From Basidiobolus meristosporus CBS 931.73 (taxonomy: Eukaryota; Fungi; Basidiobolomycota): DNA of 64,000 bases. The number at the start of each line of letters is the position of its first letter. Position 1 is the first letter of the stretch. Of the stretch, positions 26,004 to 64,000 are shown in pieces. The DNA is taken from NCBI GenBank assembly GCA_002104905.1, contig MCFE01000284.1:39220-103219 (forward strand). Direction: 5' to 3'. The notes under the pieces are model-generated. The model worked only from the letters and a program-made list of their open reading frames with translations, had not been told where the DNA came from and made no database searches. A program made the position numbers and the translations under genes.

Positions 26004-27927
26004 GGACCAGCTTGATGTGATGGCGATCAAGCCCATGTATTGAACGTTCAACCAGGAGTCGCTTGAATCATCTTTGAATAAATCCAGTTGAAGCAGTATG
26101 TGATGTATATTCGGAAGTGCGGACACTCAATCATCCTCACTGGTGCCCTAAAGACCTTCATCTATGTTTATATCGCGGGGCTCTAATCCATCGCCGCTCT
26201 CTAGGAAGTGATTGGTGGATGGATTGCGTTGTAGATTGCTCCCAACTAACATTGGCTTTGTTCCAATCGGCCATTGGGTGCTCAGGATATCGTTGATCAA
26301 TTGCATCACCCGTTGTAGGCACCCTTGCAAATCACTATCATCCAAACTGTTTATCAATGTTTCCAAACCCATGTGGGATGTCTGAGTCTCAATATACAAA
26401 TCAAAACACCATGTGCTAACCACACCCGACCCCGTCTGGCTAACACCGGGTTGACCTCGGACGGTTGACAATCCCCAAACCGCTACTTTAATCCAGGATA
26501 CCAAAGTGCCACACAACGTCAGACCAATTTAAGTCAGATGATGCTCAACAAGGATATAGCTTCGTCATTCCGTGTGCTCCGACACACACACGCGCGCTCG
26601 AGTACAGCTCGAAAGTCGGCCTTGGTTGCTCAACAAGCGTACGCTTAATATGGCACAGTCTATATGTGCGCTGTCTCTATATATAAGCTTTATGCGTTTA
26701 ATCAATGTCACCTCCTCAATACTAGGTTTGGCTAACATCAGCGTCAGCACGATCAGTTGTTAGGGTGATCTCTTCAGCCTCGGATTTCCCCGAGTGATGT
26801 CATTGTGGGTCCTCCGACGCTGAAATGAATACGATGGCAGGTTCTGGCTGAAACATGTGATATCACGGAGCATCCGGACTTGGTGCTTGGAACAGGGTGG
26901 GTTGGATGCAAGCTAGATAGGTGACAACTCCGAACAGTCGAGCGAGGCCATGATCACCTTAATCTCTATCAACGCTTAACATATTTATCGATCATCACCT
27001 GGTCCATTGGCTTCGGCCTTAATTTCCCGGGAAAGTCAAGATGATTTTTCACATCATGATACTCGTTATTGGGTTTGATTTCAAGGATGATGTATTCATG
27101 ACGAGATGCCGGCCAATCAAAGCCCGGACGATTACATCACCGCTAGGTGATTTCATCATGCTTGCCAACTTTCCCCAAATGGCTAACATGGTGTACACAA
27201 TGATTCTTGATGCTCCATTAATAAGAGAGAGCTGGAGATACAGAAACCGAGTCATGGAGCCGAAATGGCATGGTAACATGGTGCCTCAACTGCTGAATGG
27301 TCTCCGACGTTAGCCAGAAGAGGAAACAGCATCCATTTGAGTAGATGCCTGTCTCCAGTTGGGGTGAAGCGCTTTGCAGTAGCCATCTAATCTGTTGCGT
27401 ATTCAGAGCCCCATATAGTAAGCTTTAATTTAGCGGAATCCCAAGATGGGCTGGACCTGCGGCAGACTTGGGAATGGAGGTATTCTCTCAGCTGTGGATG
27501 GTGCTGAGGTTATATGGGGTGAATATTCATTCAATAAAATGTACAGGTTGTGGGGTGACACACCACTAATTCGCTTTTGGATTTGATCAACTTGATATCA
27601 ACTGAATTAGCTGCATTTTTGAGTCAGAGCATATGGATGTTGCGGTGAACATGCGATTTCGTACAGGAGGATTTCAGTTAGCCTGGCATTGGAAGTTGCA
27701 TTAATTGGACAACGAGCCAATCTACAGATTTATGTGGATCACAATGGACATAATGAGATTACTGCATTTGGAAGCGCATCCCAACGGAATCTAGTATATA
27801 AGCCTTGCGCATCTCCTGATGAAATCACCAACACTTGACTGTCCAAGATATACAGGCTTTGCCAATTGTTTGTTCTCACAAAATATCGTAATCATTAGAC
27901 AACCCCAAGTACCTAATCACCACCAAC

Positions 27928-51621: not shown

Positions 51622-52317
51622 TGTTGTGCATCAACATTTAAAACTTAGCCAATTTTACTTCGTTTGAAAATCTAGTACCCTAACTGATTTTCCCTAACCC
51701 AGACATAACAAATCCCAGTTACAGTTTATTTTATCCCACCTCAGAATCTATTTTTAGCTATCACACCTGATCTATTTCAAATGGTCATTACGTTATCAAC
51801 CTATCTGCCAAGCCTTCCCAGGTGATTAGTCATCTGAGATCTATCCAACCACTGTGCAGTTGCCAAGACATCAGTTGATTAATGATGTAATTTTCATTTA
51901 TCTTATGCACCTATGAACACCCATATTGATTTCAATCAATCCAGTCCCTTAGCGCTTACTAATTCAACTTGATCAGAAAAGTATAAATAAAGTTTACTGA
52001 ACCTTTTGGTTTAGTGTGTGTCTCAACGGAATTAAGATTCTGTCTCAGCAAAAATAAGAATCCAACAATTCTGTTCTAGTTTCTATCCAAGCCTAGTATA
52101 TCTAGCACCCCAAAGAACACCAAGCCTAGCCTGCCTAGCAAACAAATATCATTGTCTTTATAGCCAACCCAGCTATATCCAAGACCAATATTAGATCAGA
52201 ATCTTTCTGCTAATATTTCCGCCACTCTCTGACAATTCTAAGATTCTGCACTTAATTGTCCCTTTGGTTCAGTTAAACCATTCAAGAGCTTTATTACACT
52301 TTCTCTTGGATACAACA
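51622..52317. mobile_element. Candidate 696-bp LTR of a different family, with non-matching flanks
   Basis: Begins TGTTG and ends CAACA exactly where the copia RT (left) and the LINE RT frame (right) break off; TATAAATAAA inside; flanks CTCTC and ATAAG. Confidence 0.5.
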
Positions 52318-53222
52318 ATAAGTGGTAGATTGCATATTTGGATGCAAAATGTAGGCCTTTGAGTCCTGATATAAAGCCATGATAAGAGCTGTAATTGAAG
52401 GTCCAGCAAAAGCTTCAAGATTTCTCCAAAGTAGGTTACGGTCAACTGCATCAAATGCACGGGTAATATCCAAGAGTACTGCTGGAAATTTGTTACAGAG
52501 TGTGTGGTCATGGCTTAGCATGACAGCCATTTCTAGCAAGACTCTAGGTATAAAACCAAACTGATTTGCTACAAACAAGCCACTAGATGAGAGTTGCAAA
52601 GCAATTAACAGTTCCAATACCTTTCTGCAAGCTGATAAGAGGGAAACAGGGCAATAGGATTCTGCCAGTTTGGCTGAGCCTCTACCTTTGTATAGAGGAA
52701 TCACCTTTGCAACCAGCCATTCCAATGGCATTTGCACATGTGAAATACACTGCAAATAGAATGGGAGCAATATATGTGCCATGGCAGCAGGTGCCAGCTT
52801 CAAGATTTCATATGTTATATTGTCATGACCTGGTGCGGTATTGTTGGGTAGCTTATGAAGAGTTGCCTCTAAAGTAGCTGCATCCAGGTTAATTGCGTGA
52901 GAGCAATCTCTTGAAGTAGCTGTATAGGGCTTGGAGCTGTATATGTCTTGCACAAAGAAAGCAGCAGCTAAAAGATTGGGACTTGGTAGATCTTTTGAAG
53001 CTGGCTGTAGAGCTTGATATATTCTTGATATGCTTCTAGTGGTGTCTGCAGCAGTCTTCAGTGGTAGAGAGTGCATTATATGATTCCAGTAGGATGCATG
53101 TTTTTGAAGATTTTGAAGTTTCACATATTTGCCTGCATCATCCAATAGCTGCTTTGGTGAGGGGTTAGGGAATTGGCAATAGCTCTGGGACAGTGCATAC
53201 ACTATGTTATGCCACTTAGGGG
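52318..53222 (-). pseudogene. RT fragment of a second, divergent telomeric LINE family
   Basis: About 300 open codons colinear with ORF2 (APGHDNITYE, IPLYKGRG, QFGF, LDITRAFDAVDRNLLW); cut before the QG motif by the LTR candidate. Confidence 0.85.
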
Positions 53223-53330
53223 CTAGGGGAGGGAAAGTCACCAAGGTAGGTGAAATCTTTATTTGATTTAGGGGGGAGACAGTCACCAACAGGTGAAATC
53301 TTTATTTCAGTTGAAACAAAGAAGCCAGCG

Positions 53331-56099
53331 CTACTGTTGTAGCTTTGATACAAGAGTGTGTAGCTGAGGGGAATTTGTAGGTAAGTTAATAAGAAGTGAT
53401 GATAGTTCTTCAGTGCTCAAGACACTGTTCAGTGGGAAGGGGGGTAGCATGAGAGGTAAGAATGCCTTGTGAACAACATTAATGAGGGGAATGTGATAAG
53501 GATTGATATTCATCATAAAGGGAGTGTGCTGCTGCAGATATTGCTGCCAAAGGTCTGTCAAGTACTTCAGGTAGGCCAGCTTGGGTTTTTCTGACTGCAG
53601 AATATAGTGAGCAAACTTCTTGACTTCAGGATCTCCAAGTATAGTTCTCCAGCAGGAGTCAGGTGTTGTGTGGTGTGTTCTCTTCCAGGCCTTAATCAGT
53701 GGGTTGTTGCAGTTGTGAAGTCTGAGGTATAATCTGGTTCTAAGGTAGAGAAGTCTGATCTTATAGGGCATAAACCCAAAAGCACCAAGAATAGCATGTC
53801 TGTAGGGGCATTCAGGCAAATGAGGCACCAAGGAGGTAATGCACCATACTGCAAACTTGTCAAGCTTAGTGCAGTCTCTAGAAGTAAGAGAGAGAAGTGG
53901 TAAGCCAAATTCCAGGACAGGGAAGACAAACTGCTTGAGTAGAAGGAGGCAGCTGGGAGCTGAAGTTGTAGGAGGAGTAACAGCCAGTAGCTTGTGGAGT
54001 GCCTGTCTTGCCAGGATAATTCTCTTCTTCAGGTGTGCTCCAGAGTCTAGTCCAGTAGGAAGGAAAGGAAAGCCAAGATATGTAGCAGAAACCTGAGCAG
54101 GTAGAGTGGAGTTCTCCAAGTTGATGGGAGAGCCCAAAGGTACTGTCTTTGCAATGGAAAGCTGGAGATTATTCTTCTGCAGATACTGGTGGATGGTCTG
54201 GGAGTCTTGTTGCACATTGGAGGAGGATATTCTGATGTCATCAGCAAAGAGAGTAACCAGGCAGTCAGCTGAGAGTCTTGGGAAATCATTCAGGAAGATG
54301 GCAAACAGTATAGGACCAAGCACAGAGCCTTGAACCACTCCATTAGGAACTGAGAACACAGCTGATTGCTCACTTGGGTGCAGAATTCTTGCTTGTGGAT
54401 CCAGAAACAGAGATCTGACAAGGAGGGTGAGAGAGGTACTGGAGAAGCATTGCAACTTGGACCAAAGCAGATTTCTGTCAACTGAATCAAAGGCCTTAGT
54501 AATATCAAACAGAACAGAGGGATACTTGCACTGGAGAGAGTGATCTTGGCTAAGTATGACTGCATATTCCAAGGAGAGGCCAGGAACAAAGCCAAACTGT
54601 GCAGGATGAAACTTGAGGGAGTCAGAGTAGAGCTCCTGAGCAAGCAGAAGCTCAAACACCTTTCTGCAGGTGGGCAGCAGAGATATTGGCCTGTAGGAGC
54701 TAGGATCCAGGTGCTTTCCTTTACCCTTGTACAGTGGCAGAACATTTGCAAAGGACCATTCCTCAGGAGTAGAAAGCTGGGCTGAGCATTGCTGAAACAG
54801 TGGAAGCAGAAGTGCAGACATGGCCTTGGTACTAGTCTTCAGAAGCTCATAAGAGATTGTGTCCACACCTGGAGCAGTAGAGTTGGGAAGCCTCTTGAGC
54901 ACATTATGGATTCTCCTTTGATCAAGTGCAAGTGGGATGGGCAGAGTCTTGAAGTCAGGATGAAAGCCAGGAGTTGAGTACTGCTTTGTAGAGAAGAAGA
55001 TGTTAGCCAGCTGTTCTGTTGAAGGTAACTTCCTGGAAGAGGGCCTCATTGCCCTGTAGAGTCTTGATACTGTTCTTGTTATAGAGTTGGAAGATTGCAG
55101 AGGCAAAGAACTCATAATATGATCCCAGAGCTGAGTATGCAGAGTGTGGTGAATTGCCTTGGAGTGGTGTATTGCTGTCAGGAGGAGTTTCTCTGTTTTT
55201 GGGTTAGGGAAACTCAGGTAGCTTTGTTGCAGGGCTGAAACAATGGATTCCCATTTTCTTGAGGTAACAGCAGTAGTCTTGCATGGCAGTGAGAGGGAGG
55301 CAGACACCAGAATCAGATGCTTCACAAAGAGCCAGGCATAGTTGAGATCATCTGGCAGAGAAAGTAGCAAACTGGCAAGCTTCAAGTAGTTCCCAAAGTC
55401 TTTCTTCTGATTCTTGGTAGCTTTGTGGGTGAGCACAGTAAGTTTTGGCAGCTTCTTCTTCACAACTGGTTGCATAGAAAGGGACCAGGCTGGGTGGTCA
55501 GAGGCTCTCAAGGATCCTAGCTCAGCTCCAGAGAATTGCTTAACTTCATTCACAAAGTAGAGGGCAGCAGCAGAAGGGCAGATCCAGTCAACACATCTTT
55601 TCTCAGATTGAGCACCTAGTGCTAGCAGGTGGCTTTCTCTCAGGAAGTTCAGTAGGAATGTAGACCTTGGCTTCATTCTTGCAGTCAGAGTAGTCTTGTT
55701 CTCAGGATGGGGAATGTTGAGATCTCCAAGCAAGATAACAGGTGTTGATATAGATTGTTGGTATTGCTGAACCTTCTGGCATATAACTTGCACTTCCTGA
55801 AGGGCAAGACTTGGAGGCAGATAGCAGAGCACCAGACTGATAGTTGGCAACTGGAGAGCAGCACAGTAAGGGGAGTAAAGAGGAACACAGAGCTGAGGAG
55901 TATTGATGGTAGAAGAGATGAAGCAGATAGAGGAGGTATTCTTTGTTCTAGGAGTAGAAAAGCAATATAGATTAGTCAAAAGTATAGAGGGTAGCTGGAC
56001 ATCAATCAAACACAGGAGGGAAAATCTTGAAAGAAGTCTCTCTAGAGTTGGTCTTGATGGCTGTATGCTGTTGCAGTTAAGCAACAGAACTTCAGGTAG
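53331..56099 (-). CDS. ORF2: APE-type endonuclease plus LINE-type reverse transcriptase
   Basis: APE motifs LLLNCNS, CYLPPS, LGDLN, VDWI, SDH; RT motifs APGVDTI, YRPISLL, QFGF, FDITKAFDSVDR, GVVQGSVLGP, LFADDI, YLGF. No ATG precedes the APE domain. Confidence 0.93.
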   Translation of the reverse strand, partial: LPEVLLLNCNSIQPSRPTLERLLSRFSLLCLIDVQLPSILLTNLYCFSTPRTKNTSSICFISSTINTPQLCVPLYSPYCAALQLPTISLVLCYLPPSLALQEVQVICQKVQQYQQSISTPVILLGDLNIPHPENKTTLTARMKPRSTFLLNFLRESHLLALGAQSEKRCVDWICPSAAALYFVNEVKQFSGAELGSLRASDHPAWSLSMQPVVKKKLPKLTVLTHKATKNQKKDFGNYLKLASLLLSLPDDLNYAWLFVKHLILVSASLSLPCKTTAVTSRKWESIVSALQQSYLSFPNPKTEKLLLTAIHHSKAIHHTLHTQLWDHIMSSLPLQSSNSITRTVSRLYRAMRPSSRKLPSTEQLANIFFSTKQYSTPGFHPDFKTLPIPLALDQRRIHNVLKRLPNSTAPGVDTISYELLKTSTKAMSALLLPLFQQCSAQLSTPEEWSFANVLPLYKGKGKHLDPSSYRPISLLPTCRKVFELLLAQELYSDSLKFHPAQFGFVPGLSLEYAVILSQDHSLQCKYPSVLFDITKAFDSVDRNLLWSKLQCFSSTSLTLLVRSLFLDPQARILHPSEQSAVFSVPNGVVQGSVLGPILFAIFLNDFPRLSADCLVTLFADDIRISSSNVQQDSQTIHQYLQKNNLQLSIAKTVPLGSPINLENSTLPAQVSATYLGFPFLPTGLDSGAHLKKRIILARQALHKLLAVTPPTTSAPSCLLLLKQFVFPVLEFGLPLLSLTSRDCTKLDKFAVWCITSLVPHLPECPYRHAILGAFGFMPYKIRLLYLRTRLYLRLHNCNNPLIKAWKRTHHTTPDSCWRTILGDPEVKKFAHYILQSEKPKLAYLKYLTDLWQQYLQQHTPFMMNINPYHIPLINVVHKAFLPLMLPPFPLNSVLSTEELSSLLINLPTNSPQLHTLVSKLQQ

Positions 56100-57608
56100 T
56101 CAGGCAGAGGTTGTAGCTTCTTCAGAGGCAGCATTGACAATGTGACCTGCAGAGTCCCAGAGCTCTTCAAATGGTGCATCACTTAAGTCAGCAAGGAGGG
56201 AAATGGCATGATTCTTGAGGAAGTATGCCACATCATAGGAGGGGGCTTGTCTCTTGATGGCAGCAAAGAAAGACAGAATGGCAACATGGGCTGGAGGCTT
56301 GTTGAACAGTAGAGAGTCAGAGGATTCAGATTCTTCAGGCACTATCTTGAAGTCAGTTTTCAGCCAGTTAAGGTTCTTCTCCACAAAGGCAACAAATGGG
56401 TCAGCAATGTTTTGGTCTAGGATAACCTCCAGAATCTTCCCTTTTCTCCAGGCCAGGTTGACAATTCTTGAGAGCTGAATATTGCATGCCTTGAGTGCTT
56501 TCCTGATGTTGGAAATGGGAGTCCAGGGAACTTGCTTCAAGTACACCACAGTCCAGGTAGAAGCTGGTGGTAGGTTTGCTGGGGGCTTGTAAGTCCTTCT
56601 GTGTTGCAATGGAGCTGCAGTAGTCAGATTGGAGTCCACATTCTCAGTAGAAGGTTTTCTTGATGTGTCTTGCTGAATAGTACTGGAGCTGGATGTGCTG
56701 ATAATTCTTGCTAGAACCTTGCCTGCATAAGTCTGAGGTATAGCTGAGGTGACTGTAGAGGTGGTGGCAGCTGGTGCAGGTGGAGAGGCAGAGACTGAAG
56801 CAGGAACTGAGGTCACCTGGGAGAAGGCAGTAGAAGCAGGTTTTCTGGGAGGAACAGAGTTCACTATCCAGTTGTTCTGTAAAACACTGGAGTAGCTTTT
56901 CTGTGGAACAGGATCTTGCTCTTGAACAGGAACAGAAGCAGGAGGCTGGGGCTGAGCAGTAGTGGTAAGGCAGTGGCACTCCAAGGAAGCTTTTTGCAAG
57001 GCATCTCTGGCAGTTTTCAGGGCAGTATTGGCTTCATTCTTGAGCTTCTTGCATTGGGCATCCAGTCTCTTGTTTTCAATAGCCAGGGCAGTATTGGCAG
57101 CCTCTAAATCAGCAATTCTCTTCTCAATTGCAAGGAATCTCTGAAGAAATGCATCAGTAGAAGTGCTGGCATCTGGGAGAGCAGTGGCAGGAATAGAGTC
57201 CATTGACAGTGGGCTTCTTGGAGGCAAGGAAAGTGGACTGGCAGATTCAGGCACAAAAGGAGATATCCTGGCAGGAGGAGAAGGAGTATCCAAGGCAGTA
57301 ACAGAGGCAATTCTTGTTGGTGAAGCAGCAGCAGGGGAGGCAAGCCTGTTCAGAAACTGGGCAGGAGAGAGTGCTTGAGGAGAGGGAGTCTTCAGCTTGC
57401 CAAGCATGTCTTCCATCAGAGTGATACCAATATTCCTGGTGCATTTGCAGAGAAAAGTAAGCTTCCTGAGTCTGCCAGCTCTTCCATTCCTTCTGATAGT
57501 TCCTTTGTTTCCACAGTTGGGGCAAGAAATCTTCTTGACAGACTTGTCAAAGCAATCAAGAACCTTCCTTTCAGGTGTAGTGGGCTCCTGTTGAGGTTTT
57601 GGTGGCAT
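56100..57608 (-). CDS. ORF1 (502 aa): N-terminal Cys4 motif, coiled coil, Ser/Pro/Thr-rich linker, conserved C-terminal domain
   Basis: ATG at 57608; CPNC-x21-CKC; heptad stretch LAIEKRIADLEAANTALAIENKRL; C-terminal domain homologous to the ORFs at 58500 and 60596. Confidence 0.88.
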   Translation of the reverse strand: MPPKPQQEPTTPERKVLDCFDKSVKKISCPNCGNKGTIRRNGRAGRLRKLTFLCKCTRNIGITLMEDMLGKLKTPSPQALSPAQFLNRLASPAAASPTRIASVTALDTPSPPARISPFVPESASPLSLPPRSPLSMDSIPATALPDASTSTDAFLQRFLAIEKRIADLEAANTALAIENKRLDAQCKKLKNEANTALKTARDALQKASLECHCLTTTAQPQPPASVPVQEQDPVPQKSYSSVLQNNWIVNSVPPRKPASTAFSQVTSVPASVSASPPAPAATTSTVTSAIPQTYAGKVLARIISTSSSSTIQQDTSRKPSTENVDSNLTTAAPLQHRRTYKPPANLPPASTWTVVYLKQVPWTPISNIRKALKACNIQLSRIVNLAWRKGKILEVILDQNIADPFVAFVEKNLNWLKTDFKIVPEESESSDSLLFNKPPAHVAILSFFAAIKRQAPSYDVAYFLKNHAISLLADLSDAPFEELWDSAGHIVNAASEEATTSA

Positions 57609-57838
57609 ATCCAGAGTTTCAGCTTCAAATTTCAATTTTTGAGATTTTTGGGTGATTTTTGATGGGCGGGATCAAAATTAGGGTTAGGGTTGCGCGCTGT
57701 GACTGCTTTTTACGATCGCAAGGTCAGAACCTAGGAAAAAATAAAAATAGTTAGTAAAGGTGATTTAATGGATGGATGGATGGATTGGAGTCAGATTCAA
57801 TCAAAAAATCAAATCGTTGACTAATTTAAAGAGGGTTA

Positions 57839-58364
57839 GGGGGGGAGGAAAGTCACCAAGTGGTGAAATCTTTATTTACTTATGACAAGTATCTAAAGAA
57901 GCCAAGTTAATCTGAAGTAATTCCTAGAAAGCTAGGTCTGAGAGATATCTTCCTGGTAAGCCAGGTCTGAGAGTTGAGAAGCTGAGTGGTACTATATTTC
58001 CTAGTTAGCTAGGTCTGAGAGAGGTTTCCTGGAAAGCCAGGCCTGAGAAGTGAGAATCTGAATATATCTGAGCTAAGTTATACTGGTTTGCGGTAGCTGA
58101 ATTGTGGCCGGAATGGCCAGTAGACTGGGGGAACTGAGATGAATTTCTGGGCGATCACTGGCCAAATTTACTAGGCAAATCTGACCAATTAGCATTTCAA
58201 GGATTTCAGCCAATCAGAGCCTTTACTTTGCCCGATGGTTGATCAAGCCATCTCCCAATGAGCACACATCAATTTATTGATCAAATTTTGCTGGATCCAG
58301 GATTTGAACCCACAACCATGGGTATGGAAGGGTTAGGGATAACCACAAGGCTAAGTGTTCTTGG
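57839..58364 (-). mobile_element. tRNA-headed SINE-like element, copy 1
   Basis: A-box-like TAGCCTTGTGG (58343-58353) and B box GGTTCAAATCC (58300-58310) 32 nt apart; no ORF; four-hairpin body; LINE-type 3' double hairpin; flanked by TTAGGG units. Confidence 0.82.
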
Positions 58365-58373
58365 TTAGGGTTA

Positions 58374-59205
58374 GGGGAGGGAAAGTCACCAAGGTAGGTG
58401 AAATCTTTATTTGATTTCAGACAAGTCTAACTACAAATAAAGAAGCCAGCTGGGAATAGAAGATTCCCAAAGTAAACACTAAGTTGAATATGAATAAATC
58501 TAAGCTAAAGTTAAGGCAGTATCCCAGAGTACACTGGAGTTCAGGTTCATGGGGGAGTGAAGTAGATAAGCTTGAGAGATATAATAATCTTTGAGGAAGT
58601 GGGTAACAGCAGGTGAAGGGGAGTTTTTGATAAGTGAAGTGAATCTTGAGAGCAGAGATTCCTCTAATGAGAAGGTCTTGTAAACTGGAGAATCAGGAAA
58701 CTCTTTAAAGGCATGGTCAGTAGGTTCCCAGTAAAACTGGTCAGAGACATTTTGAGAGAATTGTGTTGCAATACTTTTGTCAAGTACTACCTCCAGAGTG
58801 TGATGGTTGATAAATCTCATGTTAACAATTTTGGATAAATTGTAACCTTGTTGCTTGAGATACATCCTATGCTCAGATATGGGAATAAACTCCACATTGG
58901 CAAAGTAGCAGACAGTCCAGTCAGTAGCAGGAGGTAAATCAGAATTGGCAGGAAACTTTCTTTTAGTCTTGGGAGGAGCAGCAGCATGTCTTGAGGGAGC
59001 AGGAACAGGCTTTTTGACAGCTTCAGAGTAGGAAGAGTGAGCAGGAGCAGGTGATTCTTGGGGAGTCTTGTTGACAGGAAGAGTTGGCACAGGGACAATA
59101 GATTCTTGCAGATCAGAAAAGGCAGAGAACAACTTTTGAACTTGTTTCTTGAGTAGAGCATTTTCAGCTTCAACAAGTGCAAGCCTTTCCTCAAGGAAGG
59201 AAATC
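58374..59205 (-). mobile_element. ORF1-only module A (5'-truncated), CDS 58500 to about 59205
   Basis: Coiled coil (FLEERLALVEAENALL) plus ORF1-type C-terminal domain (LPPATDWTVCY..PISEHR..KIVN..LEVVLD); own 3' UTR and hairpin; no RT. Confidence 0.85.
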
Positions 59206-59214
59206 TTAGGGTTA

Positions 59215-59977
59215 GGGGGGGAGACAGTCACCAACAGGTGAAATCTTTATTTCAGTTGAAACAAAGAAGCCAGCGCTACTGTTGTAGCTTTGATACAAGA
59301 GTGTGTAGCTGAGGGGAATTTGTAGGTAAGTTAATAAGAAGTGATGATAGTTCTTCAGTGCTAAACACACTGTTCAGTGGGAAGGGGGGTAGCAAGAGAG
59401 GTAAGAATGACTTGTGAACAACATTAATGAGGGGAATGTGATAAGGATTGATATTCATCATAAAGGGAGTGTGCTGCTGCAGATATTGCTGCCAAAGGTC
59501 TGTCAAGTACTTTAGGTAGGCCAGCTTGGGCTTTTCTGACTGCAGAATAAATTCAGCAAACTTCTTGACTTCAGGATCTCCAAGTATAGTTCTCCAGCAG
59601 GAGTCAGGTGTAGTGTGGTGTGTTCTCTTCCAGGCCTTAATCAGTGGGTTGTTGCAGTTGTGAAGTCTGAGGTATAATCTGGTTCTAAGGTAGAGAAGTC
59701 TGATCTTATAGGGCATAAACCCAAAAGCACCAAGAATAGCATGTCTGTAGGGCATTCAGGCAAATGAGGCACCAAGGAGGTAATGCACCATACTGCAAAC
59801 TTGTCAAGCTTAGTGCAGTCTCTAGAAGTAAGAGAGAGAAGCGTAAGCCAAATTCCAGAACAGGGAAGACAAACTGCTTGAGTAGAAGGAGGCAGCTTGG
59901 AGCTGAAGTTGTAGGAGGAGTAACAGCCAGTAGCTTGTGGAGTGCCTGTCTTGCCAGGATAATTCTCTTCTTCAGGT
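59215..59977 (-). mobile_element. 5'-truncated copy of the APE-RT LINE (3' about 760 bp, frameshifted)
   Basis: Near-identical to 53270-54034; 1-bp deletion at about 59750; ends TTCAGGT then TAGGG. Confidence 0.93.
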
Positions 59978-59980
59978 TAG

Positions 59981-60501
59981 GGAGGAAAGTCACCAAGTGG
60001 TGAAATCTTTATTTACTTATGACAAGTATCTAAAGAAGCCAAGTTAATCTGAAGTTACTCCTAGAAAGCTAGGTCTGAGAGATATCTTCCTGGTAAGCCA
60101 GGTCTGAGAGTTGAGAAGCTGAGTGGTACTATATTTCCTAGTTAGCTAGGTCTGAGAGAGGTTTCCTGGAAAGCCAGGCCTGAGAAGTGAGAATCTGAAT
60201 ATATCTGAGCTAAGTTATACTGGTTTGCGGTAGCTGAATTGTGGCCGGAATGGCCAGTAGACTGGGGGAACTGAGATGAATTTCTGGGCGATCACTGGCC
60301 AAATTTACTAGGCAAATCTGACCAATTAGCATTTCAAGGATTTCAGCCAATCAGAGCCTTTACTTTGCCCGATGGTTGATCAAGCCATCTCCCAATGAGC
60401 ACACATCAATTTATTGAACAAATTTTGCTGGATCCAGGATTTGAACCCACAACCATGAGTATGGAAGGGTTAGGGATAACCACAAGGCTAAGTGTTCTTG
60501 G
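59981..60501 (-). mobile_element. tRNA-headed SINE-like element, copy 2
   Basis: Same ends as copy 1 with about 4 substitutions seen; B box 60437-60447, A-box-like 60480-60490. Confidence 0.82.
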
Positions 60502-60504
60502 TTA

Positions 60505-61808
60505 GGGGGATGATAATCACCACAGGGTGAAATCTTTATTTAAATTGTAAATAAAGAAGCCAAGTTTGAATATGAATATCTGAGATAAAGTAAGCCTACA
60601 AGATAAACTTGGACTTTGCTGTATCCCAGATATCCTCAATATCAAAGTTTAGAGGAGAATGTAGCAAAACTGCTTGTTCACTGTAGTATTTCTTGAGGAA
60701 GTTTGTGACTTGAAGGGAAGGAGAGTTTTTCAACAAGCTGGTAAACCTTTTGAGGAGTTCTTTTTCCAGAGAGAATGGTACAAAGAGTGGAATGTCTAAA
60801 TGATGTCTGAATATATGCTCTGAGAGCTCCCAATCCAGCATATTTTTGACTTCCTCTGTAAAATCTTCCACAATATCTTTGTCAAGAATGACTTCCAAGA
60901 GATCCCTGGCAATGTACTGAATGTTAATAATCTTGGGCATATGAATACCTAGGTCCTTGAGGTAGTTTCTTTGTTCTGAAATTGGAAGATAGCCAGCATT
61001 TCTGAAATAGCAAACAGCCCAATTGGCAGTGGGAGGAGTATCAGGGCTGACAGGAAATCTTCTTCTGGCTTTAGGGTGCACTGGCTTAGGTGGCTGTCTT
61101 ATTGGGAGAACAGTGGACTTTGGATGAGCTTGAAGTGCTTGGGAGTATGTCTGAGTATGAATGGCAGGAGTTGCTGGTTGCTGACAGTGTTCAGATTGAC
61201 TGGAAGAAGTGCTGGTTGAGGGGTTGCAAGGTAAGGAAGTAGCTGAAAGAGAAGTAGAGAGTGCTGGGTGAAGTTCAGAGAGAGTTTTGAAAAGAACCTG
61301 GATCTGAGATTTCAACATTGAGTTTTCAGCTTCAAGAAGAGAAACTCTTTGTTCAAGGTAAGAAGTCTGTAAAGAGTGAAAGTTGGGTAAAGACATGGAA
61401 GAAGTAGATAATAAGAAGAAATGAGTAGTTGGGGTGGGAGGGAGGGAAAATAGTTAAGAAGAAAAGAGAGGAAAGATCTGAAATTGAAAATCTCAGAATT
61501 TATAGATGGATGGACAAGGGTAAAGGATAGATTAATCCAGGGTTAGGGAAAAATAGTTAAGAAGAAAAGAGAGGAAAGATCTGAAATTGAAAATCTCAGA
61601 ATTTATAGATGGATGGACAAGGGTAAAGGATAGATTAATCCAGGGTTAGGGAAAAATAGTTAAGAAGAAAAGAGAGGAAAGATCTGAAATTGAAAATCTC
61701 AGAATTTATAGATGGATGGACAAGGGTAAAGGATAGATTAATCCAGGGTTAGGGAAAAATAGTTAAGAAGAAAAGAGAGGGAAAAATAGTTAAGAAGAAA
61801 AGAGAGGG
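60505..61808 (-). mobile_element. ORF1-only module B (complete 266-aa CDS 60596-61396 with repeated 5' leader)
   Basis: ATG-initiated ORF: coiled coil YLEQRVSLLEAENSML plus ORF1-type domain (TPPTANWAVCY..PISEQR..KIIN..LEVILD); 3' double hairpin; no RT. Confidence 0.87.
61447..61808. repeat. 103-bp tandem repeat x3 plus two 27-bp partial units; each full unit ends in GGGTTAGGG
   Basis: The TAGTTAAG marker recurs at 61451, 61554, 61657, 61760 and 61787. Confidence 0.95.
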
Positions 61809-61813
61809 ATTTA

Positions 61814-63807
61814 GGGGGGAGACAGTCACCAACAGGTGAAATCTTTATTTCAGTTGAAACAAAGAAGCCAGCGCTACTGTTGTAGCTTTGATACAAGAGT
61901 GTGTAGCTGAGGGGAATTAGTAGGTAAGTTAATAAGAAGTGATGATAGTTCTTCAGTGCTCAAGACACTGTTCAGTGGGAAGGGGGGTAGCAAGAGAGGT
62001 AAGAATGACTTGTGAACAACATTAATGAGGGGAATGTGATAAGGATTGATATTCATCATAAAGGGAGTGTGCTGCTGCAGATATTGCTGCCAAAGGTCTG
62101 TCAAGTACTTCAGGTAGGCCAGCTTGGGTTTTTCTGACTGCAGAATAAATTCAGCAAACTTCTTGACTTCAGGATCTCCAAGTATGGTTCTCCAGCAGGA
62201 GCCAGGTGTTGTGTGGTGTGTTCTCTTCCAGGCCTTAATCAGTGGGTTGTTGCAGTTGTGAAGTCTGAGGTATAATCTGGTTCTTAGGTAGAGAAGTCTG
62301 ATCTTATAGGGCATAAACCCAAAAGCACCAAGAATAGCATGTCTGTAGGGGCATTCAGGCAAATGAGGCACCAAGGAGGTAATGCACCATACTGCAAACT
62401 TGTCAAGCTTAGTGCAGTCTCTAGAAGTAAGAGAGAGAAGTGGTAAGCCAAATTCCAGGACAGGGAAGACAAACTGCTTGAGTAGAAGGAGGCAGCTGGG
62501 AGCTGAAGTTGTAGGAGGAGTAACAGCCAGTAGCTTGTGGAGTGCCTGTCTTGCTAGGATAATTCTCTTCTTCATGTGTGCTCCAGAGTCTAGTCCAGTA
62601 GGAAGGAAAGGAAAGCCAAGATATGTAGCAGAAACCTGAGCAGGTAGAGTGGAGTTCTCCAAGTTGATGGGAGTGCCCAAAGGTACTGTCTTTGCAATGG
62701 AAAGCTGGAGATTATTCTTCTGCAGATACTGGTGGATGGTCTGGGAGTCTTGTTGCACATTGGAGGAGGATATTCTGATGTCATCAGCAAAGAGAGTAAC
62801 CAGGCAGTCAGCTGAGAGTCTTGGGAAATCATTCAGGAAGATGGCAAACAGTATAGGACCAAGCACAGAGCCTTGAACGACTCCATTAGGAACTGAGAAC
62901 ACTGGTGATTGCTCACTTGGGTGCAGAATTCTTGCTTGTGGATCCAGAAACAGAGACCTGACAAGGAGGGTGAGAGAGGTACTGGAGAAGCATTGCAACT
63001 TGGACCAAAGCAGATTTCTGTCAACTGAATCAAAGGCCTTAGTAATATCAAACAGAACAGAGGGATACTTGCACTGGAGAGAGTGATCTTGGCTAAGTAT
63101 GACTGCATATTCCAAGGAGAGGCCAGGAACAAAGCCAAACTGTGCAGGATGAAACTTGAGGGAGTCAGAGTAGAGCTCCTGAGCAAGCAGAAGCTCAAAC
63201 ACCTTTCTGCAGGTGGGCAGCAGAGATATTGGTCTGTAGGAGCTAGGATCCAGGTGCTTTCCTTTACCCTTGTACAGTGGCAGAACATTTGCAAAGGACC
63301 ATTCCTCAGGAGTAGAAAGCTGGGCTGAGCATTGCTGAAACAGTGGAAGCAGAAGTGCAGACATGGCCTTGGTACTAGTCTTCAGAAGCTCATAGGAGAT
63401 TGTGTCCACACCTGGAGCAGTAGAGTTGGGAAGCCTCTTGAGCACATTATGGATTCTCCCTTGATCAAGTGCAAGTGGGATGGGCAGAGTCTTGAAGTCA
63501 GGATGAAAGCCAGGAGTTGAGTACTGCTTTGTAGAGAAGAAGATGTTAGCCAGCTGTTCTGTTGAAGGTAACTTCCTGGAAGAGGGCCTCATTGCCCTGT
63601 AGAGTCTTGATACTGTTCTTGTTATAGAGTTGGAAGATTGCAGAGGCAAGGAACTCATAATATGATCCCAGAGCTGAGTATGCAGAGTGTGGTGAATTGC
63701 CTTGGAGTGGTGTATTGCTGTCAGGAGGAGTTTCTCTGTTTTTGGGTTAGGGAAACTCAGGTAGCTTTGTTGCAGGGCTGAAACAATGGATTCCCATTTT
63801 CTTGAGG
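61814..63807 (-). mobile_element. Terminal 5'-truncated LINE copy (open RT frame 61874 to about 63806, no APE or ORF1)
   Basis: Near-identical to 53270-55263; frame open; capped directly by telomeric repeats. Confidence 0.94.
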
Positions 63808-64000
63808 GTTAGGGTAGGGTTAGGGTTAGGGTTAGGGTTAGGGTTAGGGTTAGGGTTAGGGTTAGGGTTAGGGTTAGGGTTAGGGTTAGGGTTAGGGTTA
63901 GGGTTAGGGTTAGGGTTAGGGTTAGGGTTAGGGTTAGGGTTAGGGTTAGGGTTAGGGTTAGGGTTAGGGTTAGGGTTAGGGTTAGGGTTAGGGTTAGGGT
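63808..64000 (+). repeat. Telomere (TTAGGG)n, about 32 units
   Basis: Uninterrupted TTAGGG to the window end, with one TAGGG variant at 63815-63819. Confidence 0.98.

Follow-up and report, generated by a model that had tools for sequence, protein, structure and literature searches.

Why do retroelements of different kinds end in the same short sequence at a chromosome end of the fungus Basidiobolus meristosporus CBS 931.73? The DNA analysed here, called the window, is a stretch of 64,000 nt from contig MCFE01000284.1 of assembly GCA_002104905.1 (positions 39,220 to 103,219, forward strand). It contains a stack of a long interspersed nuclear element (LINE), a short interspersed nuclear element (SINE) and two elements, modules A and B, which have a relative of the first LINE open reading frame (ORF1) as their only ORF. 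Their common 3′ end, a tail of ~60 nt, is no product of chance: on comparative evidence it is a genuine feature whose RNA structure is maintained by selection. It is probably the handle by which the reverse transcriptase (RT) of the LINE ORF2 selects its template RNA and begins to copy it at the telomere, a reading that draws on sequence comparison and on analogy with known systems. We think it likely that the tail is a cis-acting 3′ module of telomere-targeted LINEs of the apurinic/apyrimidinic (AP) endonuclease type in Basidiobolus and of parasitic SINE and ORF1-only elements.

The array at the chromosome end

A terminal (TTAGGG)n telomere tract on the plus strand (63807-64000) closes the window, which therefore reaches the chromosome end. 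The tract caps the retroelement stack, which extends from ~52300 to 63800. Its members are arranged head-to-tail, all on the minus strand, with 0-2 telomere repeats between them as short TTAGGG remnants. The motif is located at the low-coordinate end of each element in the stack and, because the elements lie on the minus strand, it is the 3′ terminus of the element RNA. All copies share this strand and each is joined to the TTAGGG register, an orientation-specific insertion in telomeric repeats that leaves cDNA strand and G-strand continuous at every element. A C-tract (C3-C9) in register into TAACCC forms the junction in each case. More than 25 copies were inspected in the window and in relatives, and no A-run or poly(A) follows the C-tract at any junction.

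RNA structure of the tail

The sense RNA of the tail has two adjacent hairpins. Stem 1 is A/U-rich and 10-14 bp long, with AAUAAA in its 3′ arm. A GAUU linker joins it to hairpin 2, a stem of 4-5 bp (CACC/GGUG) with a free loop ending in U. On the 3′ side of hairpin 2, a pyrimidine spacer of 6-8 nt leads to a single-stranded oligo-C end, in register into CCCUAA.

For a comparative analysis, 15 distinct tails from the window, Basidiobolus ranarum and ENA/Logan contigs were aligned structure-blind by MAFFT. The tested structure paired columns 5-15 with 40-50 (stem 1) and columns 53-57 with 64-68 (hairpin 2). Standard pairs form in 95.0% of cells, versus 42-52% when the 3′ partners are slid. The initial annotation had proposed a covarying structure to be checked with more copies, and the larger set agrees: the covariation score is 0.290 versus 0.090 for shuffled alignments and was reached in 0/500 shuffles. 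Double-sided changes occur at 6 pairs (equalled in 2/500 shuffles), and there are 13 further pair types (equalled in 0/500). Compensatory changes include C-G to A-U at pair 6-49 and U-A to A-U at pair 13-42; pairs 14-41 and 15-40 show four or five pair types each. The closing pair of hairpin 2 also covaries, from U-A to A-U. A tail left out of model building (L242:308-374) swaps the otherwise invariant pair 5-50 from U-A to A-U.

The same two hairpins were predicted independently by RNAalifold. Folded singly, 9/9 tails have both hairpins in the minimum-energy structure and an unpaired C-rich end (z -1.5 to -3.9). Both kinds of fold agree with the structure proposed in the annotation. The loops vary freely, with 4-6 nt in hairpin 2 and 4 to ~30 nt in stem 1.

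The tail is more conserved than the coding DNA beside it. It is 96% identical between LINE orthologues with ORF2 DNA of 72-78% identity, and 83% identical where ORF2 DNA identity is 63-72%. Among the wobble pairs, 11 G.U pairs form on the sense strand versus 3 on the antisense strand. Taken together, compensatory changes, conservation above coding DNA and the sense-strand G.U bias are what comparative analysis classically shows for the 3′ recognition tail of a stringent-type LINE. Decayed old inner copies bear stem mutations without compensation.

Tail copies and their specificity

The eight copies of TCACC-loop-GGTGA described initially, spread over 53226 to 61869, were found by a pattern search of the window with all eight start positions exact. 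The pattern TCACC-N3-8-GGTGA has 9 matches in the window, where shuffles predict 0.24; the one outside the tails, at 27137, stands alone and is a chance match. The sequence GGTGAAATCTTTATTT has 8 exact occurrences in the window, at tail sites only. The module-specific loops on the plus strand (AAGGTA in module A, AACA in the LINE, AAGT in the SINE and ACAG in module B) were read correctly, and the second stem and the AGCCA after it are both present. The single mismatch in the LINE stem is A.C on the plus strand and a G.U pair in minus-strand RNA, as had been noted from the sequence and as the fold agrees. Two statements need narrowing. The double stem-loop is complete in seven of the eight copies; the copy at 53238 is partial, a 45-nt 5′-truncated remnant of module A with one arm of stem 1 gone. 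The 5-bp stem, called invariant, is so within the window; in relatives its closing U-A becomes A-U, A.G or A.C and the inner 4 bp are fixed.

All copies lie on the minus strand. The full-length LINE (53271-57838), which encodes ORF1 and ORF2, has a complete tail at 53271-53326 (covariance model, CM, 71 bits, E 1e-15). It begins 4 nt past the ORF2 stop and is essentially the entire 3′ untranslated region. Stem 1 lies at ~53299-53322, hairpin 2 at 53283-53296 and the C-tract at 53271-53276, with the fold taken from the identical copy at 61808-61875. Directly beside it, the module A remnant (53226-53270) keeps the C-rich end and all of hairpin 2; of stem 1 it has the 3′ arm and is without the 5′ arm. 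It is a weak CM match of 18 bits. The first SINE tail (57839-57903; 68.7 bits) has a 2x2 internal loop in stem 1, the hairpin 2 loop ACUU and a C7 tract in its fold. The tail of ORF1-only module A (58374-58447; 71.1 bits, fold z -3.6) has a 10-bp stem 1 with a structured loop of 20 nt, and UACCUU in the hairpin 2 loop. A 5′-truncated second LINE copy ends in a tail at 59215-59271 (71 bits). The second SINE tail (59978-60040; 60 bits) has a C-tract of merely 3 C, followed by TAACC. The tail of ORF1-only module B (60505-60561; 72.7 bits) folds with the hairpin 2 loop CUGU and has the spacer UUAUCAU. The third LINE tail is located at 61814-61869 (71 bits, fold z -3.9).

The only DNA common to the LINE, the SINE and modules A and B is the 3′-terminal 38-78 nt, according to blastn between modules; modules A and B are additionally alike, weakly, in coding sequence. 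All 8 element 3′ ends carry the tail, including the 45-nt remnant, and TAA(CCC) follows each. The CM, built from 14 distinct tails, gives the seven full window copies scores of 60-73 bits, compared with 18 bits for the remnant. The annotation had asked whether the motif is common at loci outside elements: with the CM filters off, nothing tail-like was found in the other 53 kb of the window, where the best other match reaches 10 bits. Genuine tails score 60-86 bits, versus at most 26 bits in 100 unrelated loci pre-selected for the 19-nt core. No Rfam family matches the tail; the search of 53000-64000 gave merely a sub-threshold chance match to a microRNA.

Pattern scans of metagenome and genome contigs gave ~230 loci with the 19-nt core, 100 of which make up this CM control set. 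None has the extended tail, and they were rejected as chance matches and an unrelated bacterial repeat. This dispersed repeat of ~100 nt with two adjacent hairpins occurs in metagenome-assembled genomes of rumen 'Neisseriaceae' (L133, L145, L157, L170, L175, L179, L189, L195, L198 and L208). It shares the 19-nt core AATAAAGATTTCACC...GGTG by chance and is unrelated to the fungal tail. Its two loci in the CM control set (L133, L145) score 25-26 bits.

Function of the tail

In the proposed mechanism, the LINE ORF2 protein would bind the hairpins. It would recognise the stems in general, and the loop and spacer according to lineage. The C-rich RNA end would pair with the 3′ end of the G-strand (...TTAGGG-3′), either where the chromosome naturally ends or where the DNA is nicked. 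This paired end would be the start of reverse transcription, and the new copy would be added 3′ end first and lack poly(A). In addition, the invariant AAUAAA probably guides formation of the RNA 3′ end ~25 nt downstream, and telomerase may later re-cap the eroded 5′ end. Telomerase reverse transcriptase (TERT) was also considered as the tail reader and set aside.

A bolder version of this mechanism is speculative, and we doubt it on balance. The tail would be a telomerase-RNA-like priming module, anchored by its hairpins and ending, after a fixed spacer, in a C-rich template. LINE RTs would extend the natural G-strand end alongside telomerase, and the loop and spacer subtypes would form a code pairing each parasite with one of several competing LINE lineages. 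If true, elements of several lineages in an early-diverging fungus would form an address-coded consortium that extends telomeres, and would have converged on the Drosophila system with telomerase still present.

Several points weigh against recognition by ORF2 as the function of the tail. ORF1 proteins rather than ORF2 could be the tail binders, and much of the conservation could serve polyadenylation or termination instead of RT binding. Four of the five hairpin 2 pairs never vary, bar one broken cell. As these inner pairs are nearly invariant, the case for pairing in hairpin 2 comes from its palindromy, its free loops and the one covarying closing pair. The 15 tails come from few related species or lineages, and the estimated number of independent double-sided events is 6-8. 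The structure was derived from the same sequences that were used to test it.

Could the tail be mainly a signal for 3′-end formation, by cleavage and polyadenylation or by termination? Each module of a head-to-tail array needs such a signal so that its transcript stops before the next element. AAUAAA would be the positioning element with U-rich flanks, cleavage would take place ~25 nt downstream at the C-tract, and the hairpins would merely present or mask the hexamer. The hexamer fits this well. It is invariant in 15/15 tails, and the 11 wobble or mismatch cells in its six pairs are all located on the 5′ arm. Its distance to the terminal C-tract is 23-28 nt with a mode of 25, in line with the initial placement of AAUAAA near the RNA end. 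The combination of invariance, irregularities on the opposite arm and near-fixed spacing means that the hexamer is constrained as sequence, beyond pairing. An additional role in RNA 3′-end formation or in a specific protein contact is likely from this pattern. As the main function we nevertheless consider 3′-end formation unlikely: it leaves hairpin 2 and the lineage-specific loops and spacers unexplained, compensatory changes lie outside the hexamer at pairs 5-50, 6-49, 13-42, 14-41 and 15-40, and poly(A) is absent after the C-tract in every copy. The role is compatible with an RT handle as a second function, not as a replacement, and 3′-end processing is a probable co-function of the tail.

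Common descent would need no structural requirement at all. Non-autonomous modules may have acquired a LINE 3′ end when they arose, through template switching or recombination; copying starts at the 3′ end, so that every copy inherits any 3′ sequence, and the tails within the window are indeed near-identical per module. Descent on its own is very unlikely, though, in view of a cross-species conservation that exceeds that of coding DNA, the double-sided changes at six pairs, the 95% of pairing kept while loops diverge in sequence and length, and the decay of dead copies without compensation. We find it hardly credible that the inverted repeats act as DNA, either as a palindromic site for a duplex-binding capping or silencing protein or as a hairpin of the G-strand cDNA that primes the second strand. 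TCACC/GGTGA is a perfect palindrome on both strands, and 217/240 cells of the alignment are Watson-Crick and hence strand-neutral. The wobble pairs, however, favour the sense RNA (11 versus 3), and the range of loop lengths in hairpin 2 and stem 1 is tolerable for a hairpin, not for a dimeric duplex site of fixed spacing.

LINE lineages and tail subtypes

A word-index protein search with ORF2 found five close relatives of 48-80% identity on short ENA/Logan contigs; the next match has an E-value of 4e-26 and ~30% identity. An exhaustive search of 1.84 billion proteins gave five family members plus fragments at 49-97% identity. Below the family, it lists an RT-core-only match of 31% identity (E 4e-115), then matches of E 2e-51 and weaker with 27-41% identity. 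More distant members of the LINE clade were not present in this exhaustive search, and the comparative depth is therefore limited to Basidiobolus-like sources. A gene model in assembly GCA_002104905.1 is 97% identical to the C-terminus of the window ORF2. Related tails occur in B. ranarum, in assembly GCA_002104905.1 and in the environmental (ENA/Logan) contigs. The elements of the relatives end in the same tail, then CCCTAA, often in head-to-tail stacks.

A second LINE lineage, LINE-A, was detected in the same assembly near the end of contig MCFE01000090 (L243:3995-6097). Its protein is 50% identical to the window ORF2 and 67% identical to the family member P0005. The LINE-A locus spans L243:3995-6182. 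In the segment from AAUAAA to the end, the module A tail is 95% identical to the LINE-A tail versus 84% to the window LINE tail. The SINE tail is slightly closer to the LINE-A lineage, and the module B tail matches neither LINE. By these identities, the tail subtypes follow distinct LINE lineages, with module A matching LINE-A and not the window LINE. The match suggests cognate pairs of LINE and parasite, and the loop and spacer subtypes may encode the cognate pairing. The cis 'address tag' of the initial annotation is thus supported in part: a selected RNA structure is present at the extreme 3′ end, and no other sequence is common to the LINE and the non-autonomous elements beside it. A single uniform tag for the whole system it is not, since its subtypes follow LINE lineages.

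Two further loci belong to the history of the family. The innermost member of the window array (52294-53220, minus strand) is the remainder of a 3′-truncated LINE from a third and older lineage, with identities of 47% and 44% to the other two LINEs. It has no tail of its own and adjoins unrelated sequence near 52318. On contig MCFE01000243, the same LINE and SINE tails with CCCTAA repeats are located inside a contig of 117 kb, 13-28 kb from its end (L244:7700-12450). This stack may mark a former chromosome end that is now interstitial, or it may result from an assembly join.

Comparison with known systems

In stringent tails of L2-clade LINEs, such as zebrafish L2, ORF2 reads the stem generally and the loop specifically, so stem-loop recognition by ORF2 has experimental precedent (PMC4176376; PMC1636434). 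As in eel UnaL2/UnaSINE1 and zebrafish ZfL2-1/-2, the LINE described here and its non-autonomous partners share little beyond a short 3′ tail with a conserved stem-loop. Poly(A) is absent in both cases and the RNA ends in a short specific sequence, which UnaL2 and ZfL2 use at initiation. Unlike in UnaL2 and ZfL2, the tail has two hairpins with an embedded invariant AAUAAA, and the end is a telomere-complementary oligo-C instead of a microsatellite. Its bearers are one SINE, two ORF1-only elements and LINEs of at least two lineages, in a fungal host and with the telomere as target; binding by ORF2 is putative here. By analogy, the system is an application of the known stringent LINE/SINE 3′-tail principle in a new variant form.

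Bombyx SART1 and TRAS1, telomere-specific LINEs of the R1 clade, likewise have an AP-endonuclease and an RT; they insert in one orientation in telomeric repeats and coexist with telomerase repeats. SART1 needs its 3′ untranslated region for a precise start of reverse transcription, and it needs and carries a long poly(A) tail (PMC7265360). The elements of the window have no poly(A) at any junction and by this trait fall outside SART1/TRAS1; the best match of this ORF2 among solved structures is the generic L1 ORF2p. To our knowledge, SINE or ORF1-only partners have not been described for SART1. Of the two precedents offered in the annotation, the likeness to a UnaL2-type tail holds, and the comparison with SART1 is purely functional, and poly(A) is missing here.

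The head-to-tail arrays with the 3′ end towards the centromere resemble those of Drosophila HeT-A/TART/TAHRE. Drosophila has no telomerase repeats, and its telomere elements end in poly(A). We know of no shared covarying 3′ hairpin tag in the Drosophila arrays. In the window, unlike in Drosophila, TTAGGG tracts lie between the elements and at the end of the array. Another parallel is that the Drosophila telomere arrays include an ORF1(Gag)-only element that relies on an RT in trans (PMC5537684).

Among fungi, the non-LTR (long terminal repeat) elements MoTeR and FoTeR are confined to TTAGGG chromosome ends (PMC12857005; PMC7367193). They encode a C-terminal restriction-enzyme-like endonuclease, whereas the endonuclease here is N-terminal and AP-type with GDLN and SDH motifs, so the family is not a member of this group. 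Known fungal telomeric elements thus use a different endonuclease than this family. The text of the FoTeR paper contains neither 'stem-loop' nor 'SINE'. The Penelope-like elements Athena and Coprina are added by a 3′ end complementary to the telomeric G-strand. Lacking an endonuclease, these elements are added terminally at the tips of chromosomes (PMC8557442). Their RT belongs to a different class, they form no consortium of LINE, SINE and ORF1-only elements, and the family described here is not one of them. Our literature searches turned up no account of fungal telomeres at which an AP-endonuclease LINE is accompanied by a SINE and ORF1-only elements.

The tail is a compact, testable handle of ~60 nt, with natural compensatory variants in two stems, loop subtypes tied to LINE lineages and a defined priming end. 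It could inform on the template choice of an RT, on how parasites copy an address and on how retroelements and telomerase share chromosome ends. The CM is a simple finder of all members of the consortium, including modules without coding capacity.

Coding sequences and 5′ regions

The LINE ORF2 (53331-56084, minus strand), the presumed tail reader, encodes an AP-type endonuclease and an RT. Pfam matches are RVT_1 (E 2.6e-25) and Exo_endo_phos_2 (E 3e-4), the latter a weak AP-endonuclease match. The endonuclease is N-terminal and keeps the GDLN and SDH motifs. The best relative of ORF2 with a solved structure is human L1 ORF2p (E 6e-13). In the AP-endonuclease domain (55900-56084, minus strand), the usual Glu of L-T-E is replaced by Asp (LCLIDV). 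The Asp is present in the three family members whose gene models cover the region; the P0005 model begins downstream.

According to sequence analysis, the LINE ORF1 (56100-57635, minus strand) has a coiled coil and a C-terminal domain. The ORFs of modules A and B are paralogues of this C-terminal domain (30-36% identity, E 1e-17 and 2e-22). Searched against proteins, the module A ORF had no match; hypothetical proteins of B. ranarum share 60% identity with the module B ORF. In the SINE (57839-58373 and 59978-60504, minus strand), the head has a T-arm-like GGTTCAAATCC box. ARAGORN calls no intact tRNA in the SINE, and a tRNA origin is plausible.

Motifs of the CCATCCATCC type occur in the 5′ regions of module B (61460-61810, minus strand) and of the LINE (57740-57800, minus strand). 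The 5′ region of module B has three tandem copies of ~103 bp. A motif of this type also starts the next element in the contig of a relative (L004:5040-5075), and the elements may have a 5′ promoter or end motif in common.

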